Below the pieces are notes generated by a model. The model was not told the DNA's origin and did no database searches. It was given only the letters and a program-made list of their open reading frames with translations. A stretch of DNA of 64,000 bases from positions 36,075 to 100,074 of the forward strand of contig DF236950.1 in assembly GCA_000708835.1 (NCBI GenBank), written 5' to 3'. Positions within the stretch are counted from its first letter, which is position 1, and every line of letters begins with the position of its first letter. Below are positions 9,301-33,400 of the stretch, piece by piece. A program made the translations under genes and the position numbers. The DNA is from Klebsormidium nitens. Lineage: Eukaryota; Plantae; Klebsormidiophyceae.

Positions 9301-9730
9301 ACGTTCCAACATGCCCTAGCTGGCACTGGCCGCCCCATGCAACTCATGTGACGTGTTGGCTCCTATCATAGACCGCACTTGCTTTGCATGTACGTTCTGA
9401 TTTGAAACTTTTAAGTCTGATTGTGGACGATCATATTCTATCGCGCCGGCTCATGTAGATATTTCTCGCATGCAACTGCATGAAGCTCATCGGACAGCTG
9501 CGGCGGCGGAAACAACCGCCTTTGTCTGTGCGATCTAGAGCTGCATGCAGTTCAATGCTCATGACGGTCATGCGTACTGCACATGCCAGAATCATGATTC
9601 AATACAAATTGCAATCCAACTCAATGATCATTCAGTTTACTTCATCTTGTATGGTAACCGTCATGCATGTACGTACCGAGCTCCGGCACTCAAGTGCAAC
9701 TGAACGAAGGCCGGCCCGTTGAACATGCGC
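9301..9730. repeat. CATG/TGCA-rich intergenic island (probable decayed repeat); similar islands at 15860-16340, 34200-34890, 49380-49900 and 63870-64000
   Basis: By-eye count of about 15 CATG in about 430 bp, where roughly 2 are expected at random. Confidence 0.5.
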
Positions 9731-13853: not shown

Positions 13854-13980
13854 TCCTGGAGTTGGCACTGCCCAACGTCTCGATCATCGCCAGAGCAAAT
13901 GCGAAGGCCACGTGTAGAGCAGAGTCCAGGGCGCCACTGATCGGGATGTCTGTGTGCTTCTTCCTAGCTCGGGCGCCGCC

Positions 13981-14955
13981 ATGACGGACTTCCCCAGCGA
14001 GGCGCTGCCCGCCATCCTGTCTGCACTGCGTGGCTCGGACCTGCGCACACTGCTGGCCCTGCTCAGTGTGAGTAAGCAATGGCGCGAGGCCGCCCTCGCA
14101 GATGCCGCCCTCTGGACGTCCATTGTGGTGCCGCCCTCCCTTGCTCCGCGCCTCACTGACGAGCGCCTCCGGGCCATTCTGCTGCGGGCGCAGCGCCGCG
14201 GCTTTGATGAGATTGACCTGACTGGGTGCGTCCAGCTGACGGTGGAGAGCCTGGACGCCATTCTGGAGGAGTGTGCGCGCTTCCCGCGCCGCCTCAGCTT
14301 TGTGGGCTGCCCCCAGCTGCACTGGACTCACGTGCTGGCCCTCCTGGAGAAGCTGCAAACGGCGTGCCAACCCCTGGCGTCGGTGGCCCTCCGCACAGCC
14401 AGCAAAGAGGGGCACGCAAGAGTACCAGTTTCGCAGCATTGCCCAGCTGCTGATGGCGGGTGGTCAGAGAGCTACTTAGAACTTCCTGGGGGTAAAGTAA
14501 TCCGCAACCCGCACCTTCCTAGGGCGAATCTTCTGGGCGCCACCGTGCGGGAGTCGGCGCCTGTGAGTGCACGCGCGGCGCCCAAGCTGGTGCGGCCGGA
14601 GCGGCGGCTGCGCGAGCTGGGGGTGGCGGGGATCGACTTCCGGCGCTGCAAGTGGCGCGAGCTGCGCACGCTGCAGCAGTACGCGGAGCGCCTGGACGTG
14701 GGCGAGTGCGAGGACGAGCGCTGCTTCCAGATCCGGCGTGTGGCGCCGTGCGCGTCGTGCCTCTGCGAGTGCTGCGAGCAGCACCTGTATCGCTGCAGCG
14801 TGTGCGGGGGCCGCACCTGCCGCGAGCACTGCTTTGACCGCACGGCCGCAGACACGGAGCCGCGCCTGGGGGTGTGCTACCGCTGCCACCTGCGTGGTCG
14901 GCAGCACCGCCTCGCTCAAGCGCAGGAGTCAATGGTGAGGCGCGGCTGGATTTGA
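13981..14955 (+). CDS. F-box protein, SKIP14/SKIP28-like (F-box, short LRR-like region, Cys-rich C-terminus); apparently single exon
   Basis: MTDFPSEALPAILSALRGSDLRTLLALLSVSKQWREAALADAALWTSIVV (F-box), LTDERLRAILLRAQ...IDLTGCVQLT...LSFVGCPQL, and C-terminal LDVGECEDERC...CASCLCECC...CSVCGG...C...CYRC. Confidence 0.8.
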   Translation: MTDFPSEALPAILSALRGSDLRTLLALLSVSKQWREAALADAALWTSIVVPPSLAPRLTDERLRAILLRAQRRGFDEIDLTGCVQLTVESLDAILEECARFPRRLSFVGCPQLHWTHVLALLEKLQTACQPLASVALRTASKEGHARVPVSQHCPAADGGWSESYLELPGGKVIRNPHLPRANLLGATVRESAPVSARAAPKLVRPERRLRELGVAGIDFRRCKWRELRTLQQYAERLDVGECEDERCFQIRRVAPCASCLCECCEQHLYRCSVCGGRTCREHCFDRTAADTEPRLGVCYRCHLRGRQHRLAQAQESMVRRGWI

Positions 14956-24149: not shown

Positions 24150-27100
24150 ATGGAGGCGTGTGCCTCAGCCCGCACAGGAGCGTTCGCTCCCACTCATTGG
24201 ACTTCCAGCTGGAGAACTAGTGGTGGTACAGTCCGCCGCAATCAAACCCGTGGTGGACGGCCAGTATCTGGACTGCCCACTTTCTGGTCTGGTACACCCT
24301 TGTACACGCGAACCAGCTTCTTGGGTCGGTGCCAGAACCAGCAAGATGAGCGGCAAAGCTGCCGGCAGCCAACGCGGGGTGTGCGCTGCCAGGCGGTGGA
24401 GCATGCCCAGATGAGCAAGGTGTTTGCCAGACAAGCAAAGCCGGCCAGCGGGGCCGTGCAGACAGCGGGGCAGGGCACAATTGAGATCAAGGGGCGTAGA
24501 GGCGCGCAGGAGCGGGTAAAAAGCGAGGCCGACGCTGTCAACGAAGAGGTAAGGAGCCCTTGTGGTAGTGAAGCTTCATCAGCACCTGGACTCTTTGTGT
24601 GGGCGACGGTGCTGTTTGATCTGGATTGTTTGCTGGCGCTGTACATAGCGTGGTTCGAGTTAAAAAGCTTAAACACCTGGCTGACTTGACCAGGCTGATC
24701 ACCATGGGCTTGTATGAGAGAGGTCTCGGGCAAACTCGCTGACTTCGAGTTCTGTCAGTCAGCCATTCGGCCATTCGTTCTTATTCATTCATTGTGGTCT
24801 GTTGCTTGCAGAGGTTAGATGCCCTTTCAGCCACTCTGCGAGGGGCTCTGGCTGCAGCTGTCCTGAACGGGGGAGATAACCTCCATATGGTGGCAGCCTC
24901 CATCGTGGCCCTCACCCTGGTGAGTTCGCACACTTCAAACAACGTTCATGTTTTGATGGGCAACTGAAGATTACAGTTCGAACTTGTCAAAGTTCTGATA
25001 TGCAACTGTAAGATTATAAACGTCGGTAGCACTGCTGGTCATTTGAAAACACGAACAGTACAGATGGGCTGGAGCGATTTCTTGCTTGATTTTCGTTTTG
25101 CGTCCTTCTCTGCAAGTGGCGTTCAGCTTTGCATACAGTATGTTGAAAGTCTGATCCTGCTTATGCAAGAGGCTCCTCGAACGATTGCTGCTTTTTGTGC
25201 AGTGTCCAATCATGTGAAGTGTTCTGGGCTAGCAGTTTGATCTAATGCCCAGGTCTTCCTTTGGAGGTTCTGTTGTTTCCTTTTAGTCTATCGAGGCACC
25301 TGTGTTGTATCGGTTTCTGCACAGTACTTAGCTTACTTATTCCACGTGCTGACTCGCCCCACTTGTGTTTTCCAGGCCTCTGTTCCCCCTCAGCAGCTGG
25401 GCACTTTCATCATGCAACTAGGAGACTCCACCGTCCTGCCTTCCCAACAACAAATTGAAAAGCTGCTCAGGTAGGAGGACATATTCCACACTTTAGGAGT
25501 TTGATTCCGGCCTTTCAGGACCTTTGTCCTGCTGGGCAGTTTCCTTCTCTTCTCATACATTTGAAACGAACTGGACTGCATGCGTTTTTCTTTGCTTCTA
25601 ACAATCCGAGGAATAATCAAGTGATCGAGGAGAGCTGCCCACATGGCCCGAACGATCTTCCGCATTCATCAGTTGAATGCCTCAGTCACGTGTTTCGTTC
25701 CTGTGCTTGCGGATTTTAGTATATGCTTTTACCTCTTTGAGCTGTCTTGACTTTGTAAGACTGATTTGATTAGTTTGGGATCCTGCGTTGGATTTGTTCT
25801 GCATGCCATGCTTCCCCTCTCGAATAAAAATCAAGCGTTTCATGTGATGCGTCCTGTGAGAATCTGGGTTTGGTTTCCTACGTTTTCGACTAGCTTTTCA
25901 ATGTGACATCTTAGTCGGGGTTTGTCACGTTCAGTCACCTATTTCTTCCCTAGCCTTTTTCTCTCTCTCTCTGATCTATGTTGGACAGGGACAAGTTTGC
26001 TGGGGCAGTCGTCCCTGTTTCATGGACCTTTTGATTGAGCCTTTTCCACATCTTGCACGAGCTGAACTTCACTTGCCTTTGTCCCTGGCAGACGCATCGA
26101 CCACGCTCTGCGCAGCTCCGCCTCCGGCCGCTCCAACCTGTTACAGCTCAAGGAGGCCGTGCGCCTGCTCCAGCAGAGCAGCGCCGCGCCATCCTCGCAA
26201 GTCTCGCACCTCCTCAAGGCGGCCGGAGACACCGCCTCCGCCCTCGGCACTTCTGCTGCATCCAGCCTTAGCCGGAGCCTTAGCGGCGCCTCTGCGATTG
26301 GCTCCTCGGCTGCAGAAGGCGTGGCACGTGGCTTCGCTGACGTGGCGCGCAAGGTGGCCGAGGTGGTCATTCAGTCGGACGACGGGCTCAAGGTGTCCTT
26401 CGCCATGGACATCGACATGACGTCACCTAAGGCGCCCACTGCAGAAAAAGTTGGTGCGTTTGGGCCGCAGGCGGGTGAAGACGTCTTCGCGATGCTGCAG
26501 TCGGCAGTAACGGCGCAGCGCACAGCTAAGGCCGCCAAGAAGGGCTTCAAGGTGCTGTCGGAAGACGACGGCCGGGTGGGCCGGAAGGAGCCCGTGGTGT
26601 ACGTGCCGCTCGAGCTGGCGGCCAACGTGACTGACAGCAAGCCCGTCCAGGTGCAGGTGGGCGACCGCCACGTTTCTGAAACGCCAAGTGGCAACATGCG
26701 ATCGACCGTCTTTCTCTGATCTGTTTCGACGTTCGTCGAAGAGTCTTTACATTTGTTTACACGTGTCTTGACATTTCGTACGATTTCATTTGCTTCGCTT
26801 TGTTTCAATAGACTCTAGAAAAACATGCTTCGAAGCAAGTGGGCGGGCAGAGTTTGCCAGAGACGCATTCCTTTTCGAGTCGCCCATCAGCGGGACGAGA
26901 GTTGACAAACTCTCTTCTTGTTTTCTGTGCGCAGGTGTACGGTCAGACGTTGGTACTGTGGCGCCCCCGCCCCGGCGAGGTGGCTGCCATGTCGGACGTG
27001 TGCCCGCACCGCGGCGCGTCGCTGGCCATGGGCTCGCTTGTGGGCACCACCGGCAAGGACGGCCGCGGCAAGTGCGTCAAGTGCCCCTACCACGGCCTCG

Positions 27101-29203
27101 AGTTCGACGCCGCGGGGACGTGCCAGAAGAAGAACATCCACCTCGACCCCATCAAGGTGAGGCGGACTTCGCTCCTTGCGGAAGTTTGACTCGTCAGGCC
27201 TTTTGTTAAGTTCGTGTACGCTTAGTTTACGGGCTTCCAACATTGGATCGGCTCTGCTAATCCGGTTTGCGCGTCGTTGTGTAGTTTTCAGTGGGTTTAG
27301 CGTACGCTTAGTATACGGGCTTCCAACATTGGATCGGCTCTGCTTATCCGGTTTGCGCGTCGTTGTGTAGCTTTCAGTGTGTCGAATCTATATGAAAATC
27401 CTGTTCGCTACTTGTGGTAGATCGAGCTTCATTCGAACGACGGCTTCCTCCGTGATCCTAGAGTTCTCCGCGTGGCTGTTTCGCTGGATAATGAACCAAG
27501 CAGTGGGGTAATTCGGCTTCGTCGGTGAGAAGGCTGCCCAGGACTTCGCTAGATTGACCTCTAATATTGCTCACGCGTCGCTTCCACGCAGATTGTGGAG
27601 GCCAACGGCGTTATCTGGATGGAGGAGAAGGCCCCGGCGACGGGCGTGATCGACGTGGAGGCCATGGAGATGCCCCCCCTGCTGCGCTCCGTCATGGAGT
27701 CGCTGGCCCCCGAGCCACGTGACCCCCCCGCGAGCGCTATCCCCGCCGTCCCCCGCACCCTGCTCCGCCCCAAGCGCAGCAACGCGCCCGCGGCCGCGCT
27801 CGACGCCCCGCCCGCCACCCCGCTCCCTCAGGCCGAAGTACCCGATGACGTTATGCGCGCGCGCGCGGAGGCGCTCTCGGACGCTCGGCCGAGGAGCGAC
27901 GTGGAGGTGCTGGATGGGCCGGCTCTGGCCGCCGGAAAGAGTGACGGTGCCGAGGAGGGCCACGTGGAGGTCGCGCTGGTGACGGAGGATGACACACCCG
28001 AGGAGCCCAACGCGGGGCTGCCCTTCAACGAACACTTCCTGGACCCCCACTACTCGTGAGTCGCCTACAGTGCTCAGTCCCAACCTGTTACGAGAACCGA
28101 GGTGCTTTTCCTCGACCTGTTGACAGGATCCTCGACCTGTTGACAGGATCCTGCGACCTGGGTTTGCTTGCATGTAACATCTTCTGGAATTGTTTGAAAG
28201 CGCGTGATAGGGTCGAACATGTAGATTATCGATTGCAAGTCACTGAGCTGACATAACATGCCTCTGAGTGTGCAGTTGCTAGTTTCACCGATTCGTAGCC
28301 GCGTAACGAGTCATCTATGCGACTACTTTCATCGATTTTTTAACGGTCTCATTGTCGGGTGCCAGGCCTCGTTTTCTTCGTCGTCGGATTCCTGGCCTGC
28401 GGAAATTTTCCTTTATTAAAGCTGTTCGTTCTTGCACGCGTGCAGGCAGCTGGGCGGGACGGTGGACATTGAGAGCGCGCCCCGCGCGGTGGTGGACAAC
28501 ACGTTCGACCTGCACCACATGATGTACGTGCACGCCTCCAGCTTCGGCGGCGGCGAGCTCATCCGCACGTGGAAGCCGGACCCGCTCACCATCTGCTTCG
28601 AGTACGGCATGAACCAGCGGAGCAACCCGTTCAGCAAGTTCTTCGGCGACGGCCGCGTGCTGGTCACCATGCAGCGGTCGCCCCCTTACAGCGCCATGGT
28701 CACCGTGGGCGACCCCAGCGGGGCTGTCGTGCTCAAGACGCTGACGCACGTCGTGCCCATCTCCTCCACCAAGTCCAAGCTCGTATGGCAGGTCAGCGCT
28801 CTTTACCGTCCGTTTTACTATTGTCCGAATTGTGAAGCTCCGAAGGGGTTCAATTCACCTTCGTTTCCTTGCACGTGCTTTTCTTCGTACGGTCGTTCCC
28901 TACCTGTGGCTTCATGTCCTAATTGTGGCTTCATGTTTATAATTGCACCCGGGCTGGCGGTTTCCTCGTGCCTGTTTCGACCCTTACTTGTTTCGACTGG
29001 TGAACCCGTTTCGTCTCGCTCTTTCGTAGCAAGGTGCTAACGATTCTCTTGTGCGTGTGCAGCTGCTGCGCAACTTCGGGCGGCCGTCGTTCATGGACTT
29101 CTTCTTCCGGCAAGCGGTAAAGCAGATTCTGGCGGAGGACAAGGCCGTGCTGGAGGGCGTCAACCTGCACGGTGTGCGTAAGGGCATGGACCTCGGCATC
29201 TAG
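24150..29203 (+). CDS. Rieske [2Fe-2S]/mononuclear non-heme iron oxygenase (CAO/PAO/TIC55/PTC52 superfamily, atypical), probable plastid transit peptide; 8 exons, about 780 aa
   Basis: Exons 24150-24548, 24812-24919, 25376-25470, 26092-26656, 26935-27156, 27592-28055, 28446-28791, 29063-29203 are phase-consistent. Rieske ligands DVCPHRGASL and KCPYHGLEFD, iron motif DNTFDLHHMMYVH (N-x2-D-x2-H-x4-H), and the C-terminal helix KQILAEDKAVLE are all present. Confidence 0.9.
27216..27379. repeat. Intronic tandem duplication, 2 x 86 bp, near-identical
   Basis: gtacgcttagt(t/a)tacgggcttccaacattggatcggctctgct(a/t)atccggtttgcgcgtcgttgtgtag at 27216 and 27302. Confidence 0.9.
28110..28160. repeat. Intronic 20 bp tandem repeat (cctcgacctgttgacaggat), about 2.5 units
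   Basis: Directly visible; each unit contains the small dyad cctgt-tg-acagg. Confidence 0.85.
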
Positions 29204-30494
29204 AGCGGGCACAAAACGGGGCGCACGCAAATTGCTGGGGGCTGTCAGCATATTGGAAAGGTGTAAGACCGACGAGAGGTTTGACGAACGTCCATTTGGT
29301 CGCAGCTCGCGTGAGGTTCGCATATACATGTACTGTGTTTGATAAACGGACGACTGACATGTAGACATATGTAGGATTAGTTGCTCGCGCGCTGCAAAGA
29401 TTCGTGTATTCAAATACTGATGTTGTAGATAGCATTTCGTGCGTGACGATTTTGTGTGAAGAAGCAGCGTTTGCTGTTACGTGTGCATAGAAACAGTTGA
29501 AGCTGACTGCGTGGCATGTGTAGAGTTTGCGATTGGATATGGTAGACGAAAGATAGTACTAACAAAGGTACGTAGATTAGTCTTACAAGGGTAGTGCATA
29601 GACATACCTGACTCGTACTTGACCTGTCAAAGGAATGTAGATAATTCACTCGTGTAAAGATTGTAGCTTCGACTTTACGAACTAATCTGCTATATTTTTA
29701 TAGCGAATTGCAATACCACGGTTTGATCTTCTAGATTGTCGGGTTCAGAACATATTGAATCGCTCATCATGTGATGCTAGCTTTCAAACCTCCATATTTA
29801 CCTGCGTTAAAGTGCAAATGGCTCTTCAAGCAATCATTGATGTCCTTATTAGGCATGGCTCGAGCGGTTGTAAGATTAAAGTTGAAGGGTTGCGGTCACT
29901 AGCCGCACTAGCCGCGAGTGCGTTGACGCCTCCGACGGGTTGCTTGCACTAACCAACGGTATGCCGGAATTTGGCATACATTTGTAATGTGTGGACCTCT
30001 ACGAAGAAACATGCGATGACTGTGTGACAGCCTCTATGGCCGCATTGGCAGAAAACTTTGTGTAGGGTTGAGCATCAAGAACAAGATCGAAGATTTGCTT
30101 ACCGAAGTACGAAGCACATGGCGCCCAGGGTGGAGCCAGGGGGGAGCCAGCAGCTGTAGCATTGAAACTGGTGGATTTAGGGGTGGGGACTTGAAAGTCA
30201 TGGAACATCATATAACGTTGCGGTTGGTGGACCTAGGTTAAGGTGTAACCCAGATGGGTCAACAGCGCTGCATATATGAATTATGTGACGGACGATTTAG
30301 GGTTTCGCCTTAAACCTGAAATTTTTAGAAGGGTTTGCATACGTGGCGGGTGTCGTGGAGTTGCCCAACCGTTGATAGCACTGGAGTCGCCAGCGTCAGC
30401 AATAGGTGATCTTATTCTCTGCACCTCTCGAAGCTGGAGCATTCTTTCAACTTCAAGGAAGAGTTGGTCGTCTATCTCGCCCATTTCTTCCACC

Positions 30495-33400
30495 ATGGCT
30501 GCCAGCTCTCTGCTTCTGCTCGTGACCTTGCTTGCTGCGGTTTCCGCTGCCTCTGCGTGGCGGCCTCTATTCCCCATCGTCCAGCCGAGCGTGGATAGTC
30601 TGCTGGGGGTGGAGGACAAGTTTGGCGCGTTCCTGGTGCAGTATGGCAAAAACTACACAGGCAGCCAATATTTGCACCGCCTCAAGGTCTTCCGGGACAA
30701 CTTGGTCAAGGCAACACTCAATCAGGTGCGCGGACTACAGCATTGAGCTGGTCAATATAGAAGGAATTGATGTTTCGGCAGAATGGGCGTCAAGGTGGAC
30801 GAGCAGTCATATGCTTGGGGCTGGTCCAAATTGCCCCTTGTGGCAGGTCTGATTACTGAGCTGCTACCTTAAGGTGGAGGGGGGAAATTGGGAACAAAAA
30901 GGGGAAATTACCAAACATAGCTATGGATGAACGAGACGTTGATTGCACTCCATCCGAGACCACCATGTGCCCGACACCCACTTTAAGCATATGCACCTCA
31001 CCTTTAACTTCAGTGCGTCCCCTCTGAGTTATAGGCTGCCTGTCTATAAGAACGTCAAAGTTGGGCATCCTTGGCTCGCAATTTTTCCACACTGCAATCG
31101 GCAGGATGATGTCCTCTTATTAACTGGTTTTGTGATCCTTTTCGGGAATCGAATTTATTTTGGTTCTGTGAAAGATTTGGTCTGCCAAATGACACAAGGT
31201 GTGAAAGTGGCGCTCTTAGTTGTGTGCCACGAGCATTAGACTTGGAGATGGTTCCGCTTGTTTACCTCAAGTGTTGGTTGTCGATCATAAGGGCAGAACG
31301 GAAACAATCTCTTTTACAACCAATCTTTCAGAAACCGGGGGCACTGCACCATCGACACCCCCGTACAGCCGTTTTGTCGTTCTGTCCTTCTTGGGGTCTT
31401 CTTCAAGTGGCAGAGGCTGCGAGAATTACTCCTTTTTCTCACCAGTATTTCTTTGTTGATTGCCCTAGTTTGACCTCTTGAGTCGCTTCGCTTCTTTCCT
31501 CGCAATATCTCATACTTTTGTGCATGCTGGGCGGTCACAGCACCCCAACATTGTCTTGATCAGCGCTGTTCCTACTATTGTATGGTCTTTCAGGAAGCTT
31601 TGTTTCGGAACGCCTTGGTCAATTTGCACGACTTTAGGGGCCACTTTTGATCCTATTCAGCAAGACCCACATCAAAACCCCTCTTTTTACGAGCAAGTGC
31701 CCTCTCTCCGACCTGCGCACTTCCTATTGCAATTGTGCACTGTGTGCAACCCTACCTTTGTCCTACTTCTCTTGCAAAGTCTCGTTCTGCAAGTCTCAAG
31801 CTCAACGGACATATTCTGAATCAATACTTGTCTGCCCCCCCTAGTTGAACGACCCCGGTGCGCAGCACGGTATCACGCAATTCTCTGACCTGACTGAGGA
31901 GGAGTTCCAGCACTACTACCTGGGCCTGGCCTCCGCGCACGAGCCGGGCGAGAGCATTCCCGTCGCCCCCCCGCTGCCCACTGGGGACCTCCCCGAGACG
32001 TTTGACTGGCGCGACAGGGGCGCGGTGACGCCCGTGAAGAACCAGGGCATGTGCGGCTCCTGCTGGGCGTTTGCCACCACGGGCGCCATCGAGGGCGCGC
32101 ACTACGTCAAGACGGGCGAGCTCGTCAGCCTCTCGGAGCAGGAGCTCGTGGACTGCGACCATGAGGTGGGGGAACACATTCATGTTGGGATTATGGAGAT
32201 TGGTTATTTGATGGATATTCTCTTGTGATTTCGGCGTTGAAAGGCTTATGTTTAGATTTCGACATTGAAATGCTTCTTTAATATCTGAGTATTGGCTGTG
32301 ACTGGGAGCCTCAGTGCTGGGATAATTCTTTTGAGGTAAGGGAAGACGGGTGTACACACAATCGGCTATTGCTCACGAGTAGAAACTAGGTGTAATATCA
32401 TCATGTAATCTAAGAAGGTCTTCTATCATCAGGTAAGCCGCTTGTGTAGCCTCTTCGGCACTTACTGGTAAGGCTAGAGCAACATCGCGCTCAGGGTGCT
32501 GTCATTGTACACGCCCATATGTCAGGATGGAGCTTGAGCCACTTCATGTAGTATAAGCGCAATTTTGGTGCTATACTTGCAGTTATCCAATAGATAAGAA
32601 TTCGATCTCACTTACTCTCAGTAGAACAAGACGTCCTTTTTTATGTCGCTCTCACCTTCACTTCCCTGCTGCCTGCTTAGGGGACTTCCTCGCTATGCTG
32701 CCCCTGGGGTAAACGTGCAGTGGTGTTTTCCCCGCAACTCTGCCCTTTTTAATAGGCCCCCCCTCTTGCATATTTACAGTGCGACCCCAATTTCCCGGAG
32801 GCGTGTGACAGCGGGTGCAGCGGAGGGCTGCCTAACAATGCGCTGGAGTGGATCGTGGATAAGGGTGGCCTCGTTTCGGAGGCGGACTACCCCTACTCGG
32901 GCCAGGACGGCACCTGCAAGCTCACCGACTCTCTCACGATTGCGGCCAAGGTTGACAACTTTTCGCGCGTCGCAGTCGACGAAGAGCAGGTGCGTACCCG
33001 CCCGCCAAGACAGGGCCTGTGACGGGTCTTGGTATTTGTCCATCGACCATTCTCCTGGAGTTCGTCAAAGTAGCTCACTAGCCAAGTGGCAATCGATTGG
33101 TCCCTTATTGGTGCCCAAGCAGACATAGGCATGATCCACCTTGTTTCCTTCCCCGTTGAGCTGTCATGTGAAAGCCTTGATACTGTCGAAAAGCTGGCTC
33201 CGACCGTCGATTCACAGTACCTGCTGTATTATGTCCTTCTTCCTGACACCCGCTCCAGTCAAAGCGCTCCTTACTGCATACAGGATCACATGTATGATCG
33301 CAAGCCTGCTTCCTGACCTGTTACCTTACTGCGCTGCAGATTGCGGCGAACCTGGTGAAGTTCGGCCCGCTGGCCATCGGCATCAACGCCAACTACCTGC

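Follow-up and report, generated by a model that had tools for sequence, protein, structure and literature searches.

A putative VanA/DdmC-type Rieske monooxygenase gene with a long N-terminal region and an inter-domain insert in Klebsormidium nitens

Do streptophyte algae possess Rieske oxygenases that fit none of the kinds described in land plants? The question is raised by a gene at positions 24150–29203 (+) of the window, i.e., the whole stretch of 64,000 nt from Klebsormidium nitens that was analyzed (assembly GCA_000708835.1, contig DF236950.1, positions 36,075 to 100,074 of the forward strand). Five Rieske-type oxygenases are attributed to Arabidopsis, CAO, PAO, TIC55, PTC52, and CMO, and PAO, TIC55, and PTC52 are green-lineage enzymes with a Rieske cluster and a mononuclear iron that act in the plastid (PMC9306834). 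The initial annotation of the window had found that the gene fits none of the five well and had ascribed to it an atypical architecture, with long additional stretches before and after the Rieske domain. We find that the locus is probably a working nuclear gene from a streptophyte alga of the Klebsormidium type, encoding a 779-aa Rieske non-heme-iron monooxygenase of the VanA/DdmC type with only an alpha subunit. The kind of enzyme is known, but no description of the family to which it belongs was found in the literature.

Catalytic apparatus and fold

The coding sequence is distributed over eight exons (2340 nt in total, 779 codons plus a stop codon) with GT donors, AG acceptors and matching phases. 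The first Rieske strands (KEPVVYVPLELAANVTDSKPVQVQ) are encoded at 26585–26656, the last part of exon 4 (26092..26656), and the [2Fe-2S] cluster-binding core by exon 5 (26935..27156). CPH at 27001–27009 and CPYH at 27082–27093 lie inside this fold and make up the Rieske pattern Cys-x-His ... Cys-x-x-His. The fold ends at the beginning of exon 6 (IVEANGVIWMEEK, 27592–27630). Exon 7 (28446..28791) encodes the catalytic domain. Its mononuclear-iron motif, DNTFDLHHMMYVH, lies at 28495–28533, and in it the predicted His ligands are at 28516–28518 and 28531–28533 and the predicted bridging Asp at 28507–28509. Exon 8 (29063..29203, stop codon at 29201–29203) encodes a C-terminal helix with the motif AEDKAVLE at 29132–29155 and the Asp ligand at 29138–29140. 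It aligns with the C-termini of the relatives from K. nitens, Chara and Chlorokybus described below.

Both sets of metal ligands had been called intact, and both are borne out. Exon 5 matches the Pfam Rieske family with E 4e-16, and HMMER aligned H465, H470, and D581 of the K. nitens paralogue with the ligands H160, H165, and D294 of DdmC, and its bridging Asp (D462) with D157. The metal-ligand columns as well as the Rieske ligands are invariant in 18 homologues. As judged from ligands and domains, the product thus shows the complete predicted apparatus for electron transfer and oxygen activation of a Rieske monooxygenase.

Exons were translated and searched singly; for the fold and phylogeny of the full-length protein we relied on naturally occurring full-length relatives. 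The Pfam family VanA_C (PF19112, cut-off 23.5 bits) was matched by exon 7 alone (32.3 bits, E 1.4e-7), by the core of the paralogue (50.9 bits) and by the Chlorokybus protein (35.7 bits). The match covers positions 2–159 of the 193 in the model, and the ≈34 last model positions are missing together with several loops. PaO (PF08417, cut-off 27 bits) scored below its cut-off with the paralogue (18.6 bits) and the Chlorokybus protein (14.8 bits) and gave no match in the window exons. The catalytic half, in which a likeness to VanA/PAO-like proteins had been noted, scores as VanA_C. Ring_hydroxyl_A (PF00848), which we take to be the catalytic domain of the CMO type, matched none of the exons at E values up to 0.1. 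In Pfam and NCBIfam only exons 5 and 7 had a match, and no family was found for the N-terminal exons or the insert.

The sequence of exon 5 matched DdmC, NdmB, and SxtT in the PDB. An AlphaFold2 model of the paralogue had a predicted local distance difference test (pLDDT) score of ≈90 in the Rieske domain and 55–89 in the catalytic domain. Searched with Foldseek, this model of the paralogue, not of the window protein, had its best match in DdmC (3gb4; E 7e-18, template modelling score by target 0.66), followed by GxtA/SxtT, NdmA/B, and KshA, all of them alpha3 monooxygenases. The DdmC-like fold predicted for the window protein is thus one modelled on its paralogue.

N-terminal region, insert and coding constraint

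Orthologues of the gene were present in three environmental metagenome contigs, L001, L002 and L003 (the last a near-duplicate of L002), whose DNA is 72–91% identical to the window and matches every exon and no intron. Exons were compared one by one with BLAST; a MAFFT fragment alignment misplaced the N-terminal and insert pieces and was discarded. The ratio of nonsynonymous to synonymous substitutions (dN/dS), calculated codon-wise against L001 and L002, was 0.01–0.37 across all exons compared, and all gaps were whole codons. The comparison with these two orthologues spans dS values of 0.4–1.5. Exon 5 (89–92% aa identity) and exon 8 had dN/dS values of 0.10–0.11 and 0.01–0.08, respectively. 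Purifying selection acts on all parts of the gene, including the N-terminal region and the insert, and both are coding.

Exons 4–8 have a G+C content at third codon positions (GC3) of 0.80–0.97, exons 1–3 of 0.58–0.64, and the introns have a G+C content of 0.45–0.51. As the GC3 of exon 4 is 0.90–0.95 directly past its acceptor, coding must extend upstream of its sole internal ATG, which makes upstream exons necessary. The donor of exon 4 was set at 26656 rather than 26650 on the basis of a gap-free alignment to the paralogue (P0008) and the Chara protein (P0010). In L001, exon 4 (2276–2883) is broken into two frames near 2630, probably by an assembly error, the coverage being 2x according to the contig name.

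The N-terminal region, put at about 350 aa by the initial annotation, has a length of ≈365 aa here, since the Rieske fold begins at about residue 366 (KEPVVYVPLE, 26585). Exon 1 (24150..24548) starts with ATG at 24150, stays in an open frame and ends at the donor GTAAGG. Its first part (24150–24410) encodes an 87-aa stretch rich in S, T, R, and G, with 22% S+T, 5% D+E and a net charge of +8. Matching N-terminal stretches are alike in four family members, i.e., the window gene, L002, the paralogue transcript and Chlorokybus (S+T 15–22%, D+E 3–6%, charge +8 to +12). The transit-peptide-like N-terminus noticed at first thus has a composition of the presequence type, which recurs in three relatives. 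The open reading frame (ORF) of L002 opens with the same MEA..SAR as the window gene, and this conserved opening together with the presequence-like composition supports 24150 as the true start. The rest of exon 1 (24411–24548) encodes a conserved tail, MSKVFARQ...AVNEE, with a dN/dS of 0.17–0.37.

Exon 2 (24812..24919) has 36 codons and encodes a hydrophobic helix-turn-helix, LSATLRGALAAAVLNG-GDN-LHMVAASIVALTL, which is a possible membrane hairpin and, among family members, the most conserved element of the N-terminal region. It shows 94% aa identity to L001 and L002 (dN/dS 0.03–0.08) and is similar to residues 42–77 of the paralogue (E 1.6e-4), in which the hairpin exon also has exactly 36 codons, and to the Chara protein (E 0.006). 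Exon 3 (25376..25470; 95 nt, phase 2 at its end) continues the N-terminal region, aligns with L001 and L002 (dN/dS 0.07–0.15) and has a weak match to residues 88–110 of the paralogue. The N-terminal part of exon 4 (26092–26584) is A/S-rich and probably helical, has whole-codon gaps and is collinear with the Chara protein. The helical A/S-rich region described from the sequence is thus real in the sense that it is coding (dN/dS 0.11–0.14) and probably helical, and it belongs to no Pfam or NCBIfam family. A search of the ESM Atlas with the N-terminal region of the paralogue returned nothing.

Exon 6 (27592..28055) encodes the end of the Rieske fold, the inter-domain insert (about 27631–28017) and the conserved PFNEHF (28018–28038) that leads into the catalytic domain, with a GC3 of 0.75–1.0 throughout. 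The P/A/E-rich insert noted after the Rieske fold was found again as ≈130 aa rich in A, P, E, D, and V with codon-sized gaps (one and four). It exceeds that of the bacterial homologues by ≈100 aa and those of the paralogue and Chara by ≈75 aa. Its edges are common to the paralogue, Chara and Chlorokybus, and its middle block occurs only in the orthologue group of the window gene. Exon 6 as a whole is 77–82% identical to L001 and L002 at the aa level (dN/dS 0.18–0.19). AlphaFold2 predicted only two short helices in exon 6, at exon residues 29–37 and 85–96, with a predicted template modelling score of 0.15, and the insert of the paralogue had a pLDDT below 50. The insert may therefore be a mostly disordered but constrained surface loop, possibly with a role in docking or regulation.

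No C-terminal hydrophobic segment is present, as had been stated: the highest Kyte-Doolittle value of any 19-residue stretch was 0.98 for exon 7 and 0.45 for exon 8. A single Cys residue occurs in exon 7 and none in exon 8, which leaves no CxxC motif in either.

Transcript-level evidence comes from a 2970-nt metagenome contig of a close relative (L018), which matches the core of the paralogue without interruption. As the K. nitens genomic copy of the paralogue is split by many introns, L018 is a spliced transcript. Its 685-aa ORF (L018:373–2430) contains the presequence, hairpin, helical region, Rieske domain, insert and catalytic domain on one mRNA.

Relatives and phylogenetic position

When 1.84 billion representative proteins were searched exhaustively with phmmer for relatives of the catalytic exon, six matches fell below E 0.001: a 725-aa protein of Chlorokybus atmophyticus (48%), four short Klebsormidium-like fragments (76–97%) and one spurious repeat protein. 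PAO, TIC55, and PTC52 were not among the matches of this search. The cluster of one Klebsormidium-like fragment contains K. nitens KFL_004900060 (GAQ89139.1, 601 aa), which is 67–70% identical to the core exons of the window gene and is for this reason regarded as its paralogue. Word searches from the paralogue and the Chlorokybus protein added CBR_g45555 (GBG87496.1) of Chara braunii. Past the family, they gave bacterial VanA-like proteins of 340–385 aa with 24–29% identity.

The family thus appears small, and members turned up only in Chlorokybus, Klebsormidium (two paralogues) and Chara. The known members, Chlorokybus Chrsp64S07181, K. nitens KFL_004900060, and Chara CBR_g45555, are annotated as hypothetical or Rieske domain-containing proteins, and the window exons are 57–70% identical to them. 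No paper naming any of the public accessions of the family was found. All have the same architecture, with a hairpin ≈230 residues before the Rieske fold, a helical and poorly conserved stretch, the Rieske domain, an insert with PFL and PFxxxF at its borders, and a compact catalytic domain that ends in GMDLG.

A K. nitens scaffold piece (L015) matches the window solely at the paralogous exons (70–80%). An intron after ...TICFE is present in the orthologues and in the K. nitens paralogue (L001:4460–4707, L002:10350–10633, L015:11091–11701). Exon 7 of the window is uninterrupted at the corresponding place (28600–28605), and the window copy has apparently lost this intron. The paralogue further contains one more intron in its counterpart of exon 4 and lacks one at the junction 28055/28446. 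Its actual Rieske exon lies at L015:9639–9843, and the intron before it holds two extra partial copies of the exon start (9348–9399 and 9495–9548). In the public model of the paralogue, GAQ89139.1 (601 aa), the start codon seems to have been placed too far downstream. The L018 ORF is 84 residues longer at the N-terminus, and in the K. nitens scaffold DNA for the additional N-terminus precedes the annotated start (L015:5734–6106).

Phylogenetic trees were calculated with 39 rows (careful, site-mixture model) and 97 rows (quick). The family was represented in them by Chlorokybus, K. nitens KFL_004900060 and Chara, CAO by two sequences, and the rows comprised neither the window gene itself nor PAO, TIC55, PTC52, and CMO. 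In both trees the family forms a separate clade with 100% support and a stem of ≈1.3 changes per site (100/100 and 1.32 in one of them), apart from the CAO pair (100/99), two bacterial VanA clades, two cyanobacterial clades and a giant-virus clade, the backbone being a polytomy. Inside the family Chlorokybus branches first, followed by Klebsormidium and Chara together (99/98). As this follows the species order, it points to vertical descent from an early streptophyte.

The approximately unbiased (AU) test did not reject a clade of the family and CAO (p 0.73, and p 0.47 with a log-likelihood difference of 0.9; two CAO sequences only). The suggestion that the gene fits no known plant Rieske oxygenase thus holds with regard to the domain scores (PaO under and VanA_C over the cut-off, no Ring_hydroxyl_A), the missing C-terminal helix and CxxC, and the separate 100/100 clade. 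For CAO it holds in part: the family is outside the CAO pair in the free trees, yet sisterhood with CAO is not rejected. The distinctness from PAO, TIC55, PTC52, and CMO rests on the domain scores, the absent C-terminal helices and CxxC, and the absence from the phmmer matches of the catalytic exon. As far as this can be tested, the window gene appears to lie outside the described clades of plant Rieske oxygenases.

Scans of viral, bacterial and archaeal genome collections gave nearest identities of 22–28% (giant viruses, Polyangiales, Acidimicrobiia and many cyanobacteria), and the likeness to bacterial and algal-virus VanA-like proteins that had been pointed out is therefore real but distant. 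The nearest full-length relatives outside the family are prokaryotic VanA_C proteins of 335–385 aa (Acinetobacter, Polyangiales, Acidimicrobiia, cyanobacteria). By features, the nearest ESM Atlas clusters are Rieske/VanA_C proteins of Nucleocytoviricota (0.92–0.93). The neighborhood of the nearest Acinetobacter homologue contains a LysR regulator, no reductase and no clue to the substrate. A giant-virus origin was rejected on finding the viral relatives no nearer than the bacterial ones, and cyanobacterial ancestry on finding the family grouped with neither cyanobacterial clade in the 97-row and 39-row trees. Matches of ≈1.2 kb to picocyanobacteria first appeared to indicate homologues with a large insert, but they span two adjacent genes instead. 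In freshwater Synechococcus/Cyanobium (e.g., L035:3001–4291) the match continues past the stop codon of a VanA_C-type gene of 332–340 aa, which suggests a related gene directly downstream.

The Rieske genes of bins labelled Bordetella parapertussis, Tabrizicola, Candidatus Sulfopaludibacter and Rhizobium (L032, L033, L037 and L045) fall among Synechococcus/Cyanobium sequences in the tree. Their end branches are 0.009–0.04 for the Bordetella-, Tabrizicola- and Rhizobium-labelled bins and 0.17 for Sulfopaludibacter, and the bin labels look wrong.

In the vicinity of the window gene, the next gene downstream (30276–30743, +) has a cathepsin propeptide (I29) domain at its start. In the orthologous contig, I29 and Peptidase_C1 occupy the same relative place (L001:7988–9622), indicating that the local gene order is conserved. 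A 333-aa open frame with an F-box-like domain (E 3.6e-6) is found at 13954–14952 (+). Short tandem repeats occur in introns 5, 6, and 7 of the window gene, at 27216–27379 (86-bp unit, 1.9 copies), 28109–28160 (20-bp unit, 2.5 copies) and 28905–28945 (19-bp unit, 2.1 copies).

Proposed mechanism, alternative explanations and known systems

The known mechanism of the family and the plant enzymes suggest how the product might work. The first ≈85–95 residues would serve as an organellar, probably plastid, presequence for import, and the hydrophobic hairpin of exon 2 together with the helical A/S-rich region might then attach the enzyme to a membrane, mirroring at the N-terminus what C-terminal anchors do in PAO, TIC55, and PTC52. 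In the trimer that would be formed, reduced ferredoxin would supply the Rieske cluster of one subunit, and the cluster would pass single electrons via the bridging Asp to the iron of the neighboring subunit, head-to-tail. O2 would be activated at this iron and one oxygen atom introduced into a probably small or membrane-bound substrate, by hydroxylation or by O- or N-demethylation. The disordered insert would form a surface loop that has expanded in the orthologue group of the window gene, and its constrained short helices may dock a partner or have a regulatory function.

Several observations weigh against this view of the gene and its product. The hairpin of the window copy is only moderately hydrophobic (Kyte-Doolittle 1.17 over 19 residues, compared with 2.0–2.2 in the paralogue, Chara and Chlorokybus). 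Its length does not suffice for two complete membrane spans, and it might just as well be a helical hairpin buried within a soluble domain. In the AlphaFold2 model, the paralogue has an all-helical N-terminal region, but at low confidence. The shortened catalytic domain could conceivably have an altered or non-catalytic role. The first 87 codons evolve fast and barely align between species, the alignment to L001 and L002 covering 24379–24552, and the first 180 nt of the coding sequence have a low GC3 (0.30–0.65). The model of the window copy is based on sequence conservation and composition, the evidence for a single mRNA being that of the paralogue, and an annotated protein identical to the window gene was absent from the protein collections searched with phmmer and word searches.

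The weaknesses at the 5′ end could mean that the gene model is an artefact, with N-terminal exons taken from another gene or an insert that is an unrecognized in-frame intron. The lower GC3 of exons 1–3 (0.58–0.64) compared with exons 4–8 would fit this, as would the public model of the paralogue, which starts later than its transcript. We nevertheless find such an artefact very improbable. Exon 4 fuses 165 codons of the N-terminal region to the start of the Rieske domain in one open frame, with a GC3 of 0.9 past the acceptor, and exons 2 and 3 are strongly constrained and homologous to the N-terminal regions of the paralogue and Chara. The insert has a GC3 of 0.75–1.0, a dN/dS of 0.18–0.19 and codon-sized gaps only. 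The initial annotation had itself named as a refutation that the N-terminal region and insert are spliced out or belong to a separate gene. The transcript of the paralogue has both in one 685-aa ORF, and for the window gene the notion is contradicted by conservation, i.e., alignment of exons only, low dN/dS and codon gaps. Hardly any weight needs to be given to the idea that the window gene arose as a copy of a KFL_004900060-type gene and is now decaying or has lost its catalytic activity. It is one of two paralogues (67–70% in the core), has no annotated protein that we could find and carries an expanded low-complexity insert, but its 779 codons form an unbroken frame, no metal ligand is missing, and core and insert have dN/dS values of 0.01–0.19 against two orthologues at dS 0.4–1.5.

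The gene might instead be a very divergent member or a sister lineage of CAO, with the N-terminal extension in the role of the regulatory A and B domains of CAO. A common clade is not rejected by the AU test (p 0.73; 0.47), CAO (P0045) is the sole named plant protein in the word search from the Chlorokybus core (E 3.4e-7), both have long N-terminal extensions, and the iron motif opens with DN, as the initial annotation stated for CAO. Against this, the match to CAO is one of the Rieske domain only (29–30% over ≈110 aa), and the full-length likeness to bacterial proteins (27% over 339 aa, E 3e-23) is greater than that to a CAO-like protein (P0047; 21%, E 6e-16). CAO passes the PaO cut-off (P0045 carries PF08417), which the family does not, and the motif DN..DL.H....H also occurs in DdmC and bacterial VanA-like proteins. 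As the N-terminal regions have no detectable similarity and the CAO pair (100/99) excludes the family in the free trees, we regard this relationship as unlikely. That a bacterial or giant-virus VanA-like gene was acquired by horizontal transfer, the host adding presequence, N-terminal region and insert later, would agree with the prokaryotic full-length relatives and with the Nucleocytoviricota clusters (0.92–0.93) nearest in the ESM Atlas. It strikes us as quite unlikely, as identity to all candidates is just 22–28% and the backbone polytomy leaves no donor clade. The family is further spread over three classes of streptophyte algae with species-like branching, spliceosomal introns and host-like GC3. 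Given this range, the introns and the GC3, any transfer would have been ancient and is here indistinguishable from descent via the plastid ancestor.

Beyond the preferred reading of a functional VanA/DdmC-type monooxygenase, it is possible, if doubtful, that the family is a sixth lineage of plastid Rieske oxygenases in the green lineage. The streptophyte ancestor would already have had it, Chlorokybus and Chara would have retained it, Klebsormidium would have retained and duplicated it, and its loss would precede Zygnematophyceae and land plants. With an N-terminal hairpin as its anchor, it would modify a compound of the plastid membranes such as a tetrapyrrole, carotenoid or prenylquinone. 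If this is true, land plants either no longer carry out the reaction or do so by other means. The gene points to a further conserved family that combines an N-terminal hydrophobic element, a compact catalytic domain of the VanA type and an expandable inter-domain loop. Seen only in the algal grade below land plants, the family provides a candidate for an oxidation step peculiar to an early streptophyte lineage and can serve to mark gene loss towards land plants.

At least three of the five Arabidopsis Rieske oxygenases act on chlorophyll or its breakdown products. With CAO the window gene shares the long N-terminal extension of a green-lineage Rieske oxygenase, and CAO is the sole named plant protein that was matched, but the likeness is confined to the Rieske domain, the N-terminal regions cannot be aligned, and the family is below the PaO cut-off that CAO passes. 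PAO, TIC55, and PTC52 have a C-terminal CxxC motif and C-terminal membrane helices. The window gene resembles them in its presequence-like N-terminus and hydrophobic element, but this element is N-terminal instead of C-terminal, exons 7 and 8 have no CxxC, and PaO is under the cut-off. The giant-virus Rieske/VanA_C proteins (335–440 aa) have the same two-domain core, but only 22–24% identity, neither N-terminal region nor insert, and separate long-branch clades.

Among characterized enzymes the likeness is greatest to DdmC (3GB4) and VanA, with a core of Rieske and VanA_C domains, the same ligands and the bridging Asp in DN..DL.H....H, and DdmC is the best PDB match by both sequence and fold. 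At 23% identity, however, the window gene has ≈365 extra residues at the N-terminus and ≈100 extra between the domains, its catalytic domain is shorter, and it is eukaryotic, with introns and without an adjacent reductase gene. Compared with KFL_004900060, the window gene is the second Klebsormidium paralogue, with an insert ≈75 residues longer and without the TICFE intron. With this paralogue and the Chara and Chlorokybus proteins it shares the hairpin, the helical region, the bounded insert and the GMDLG end.

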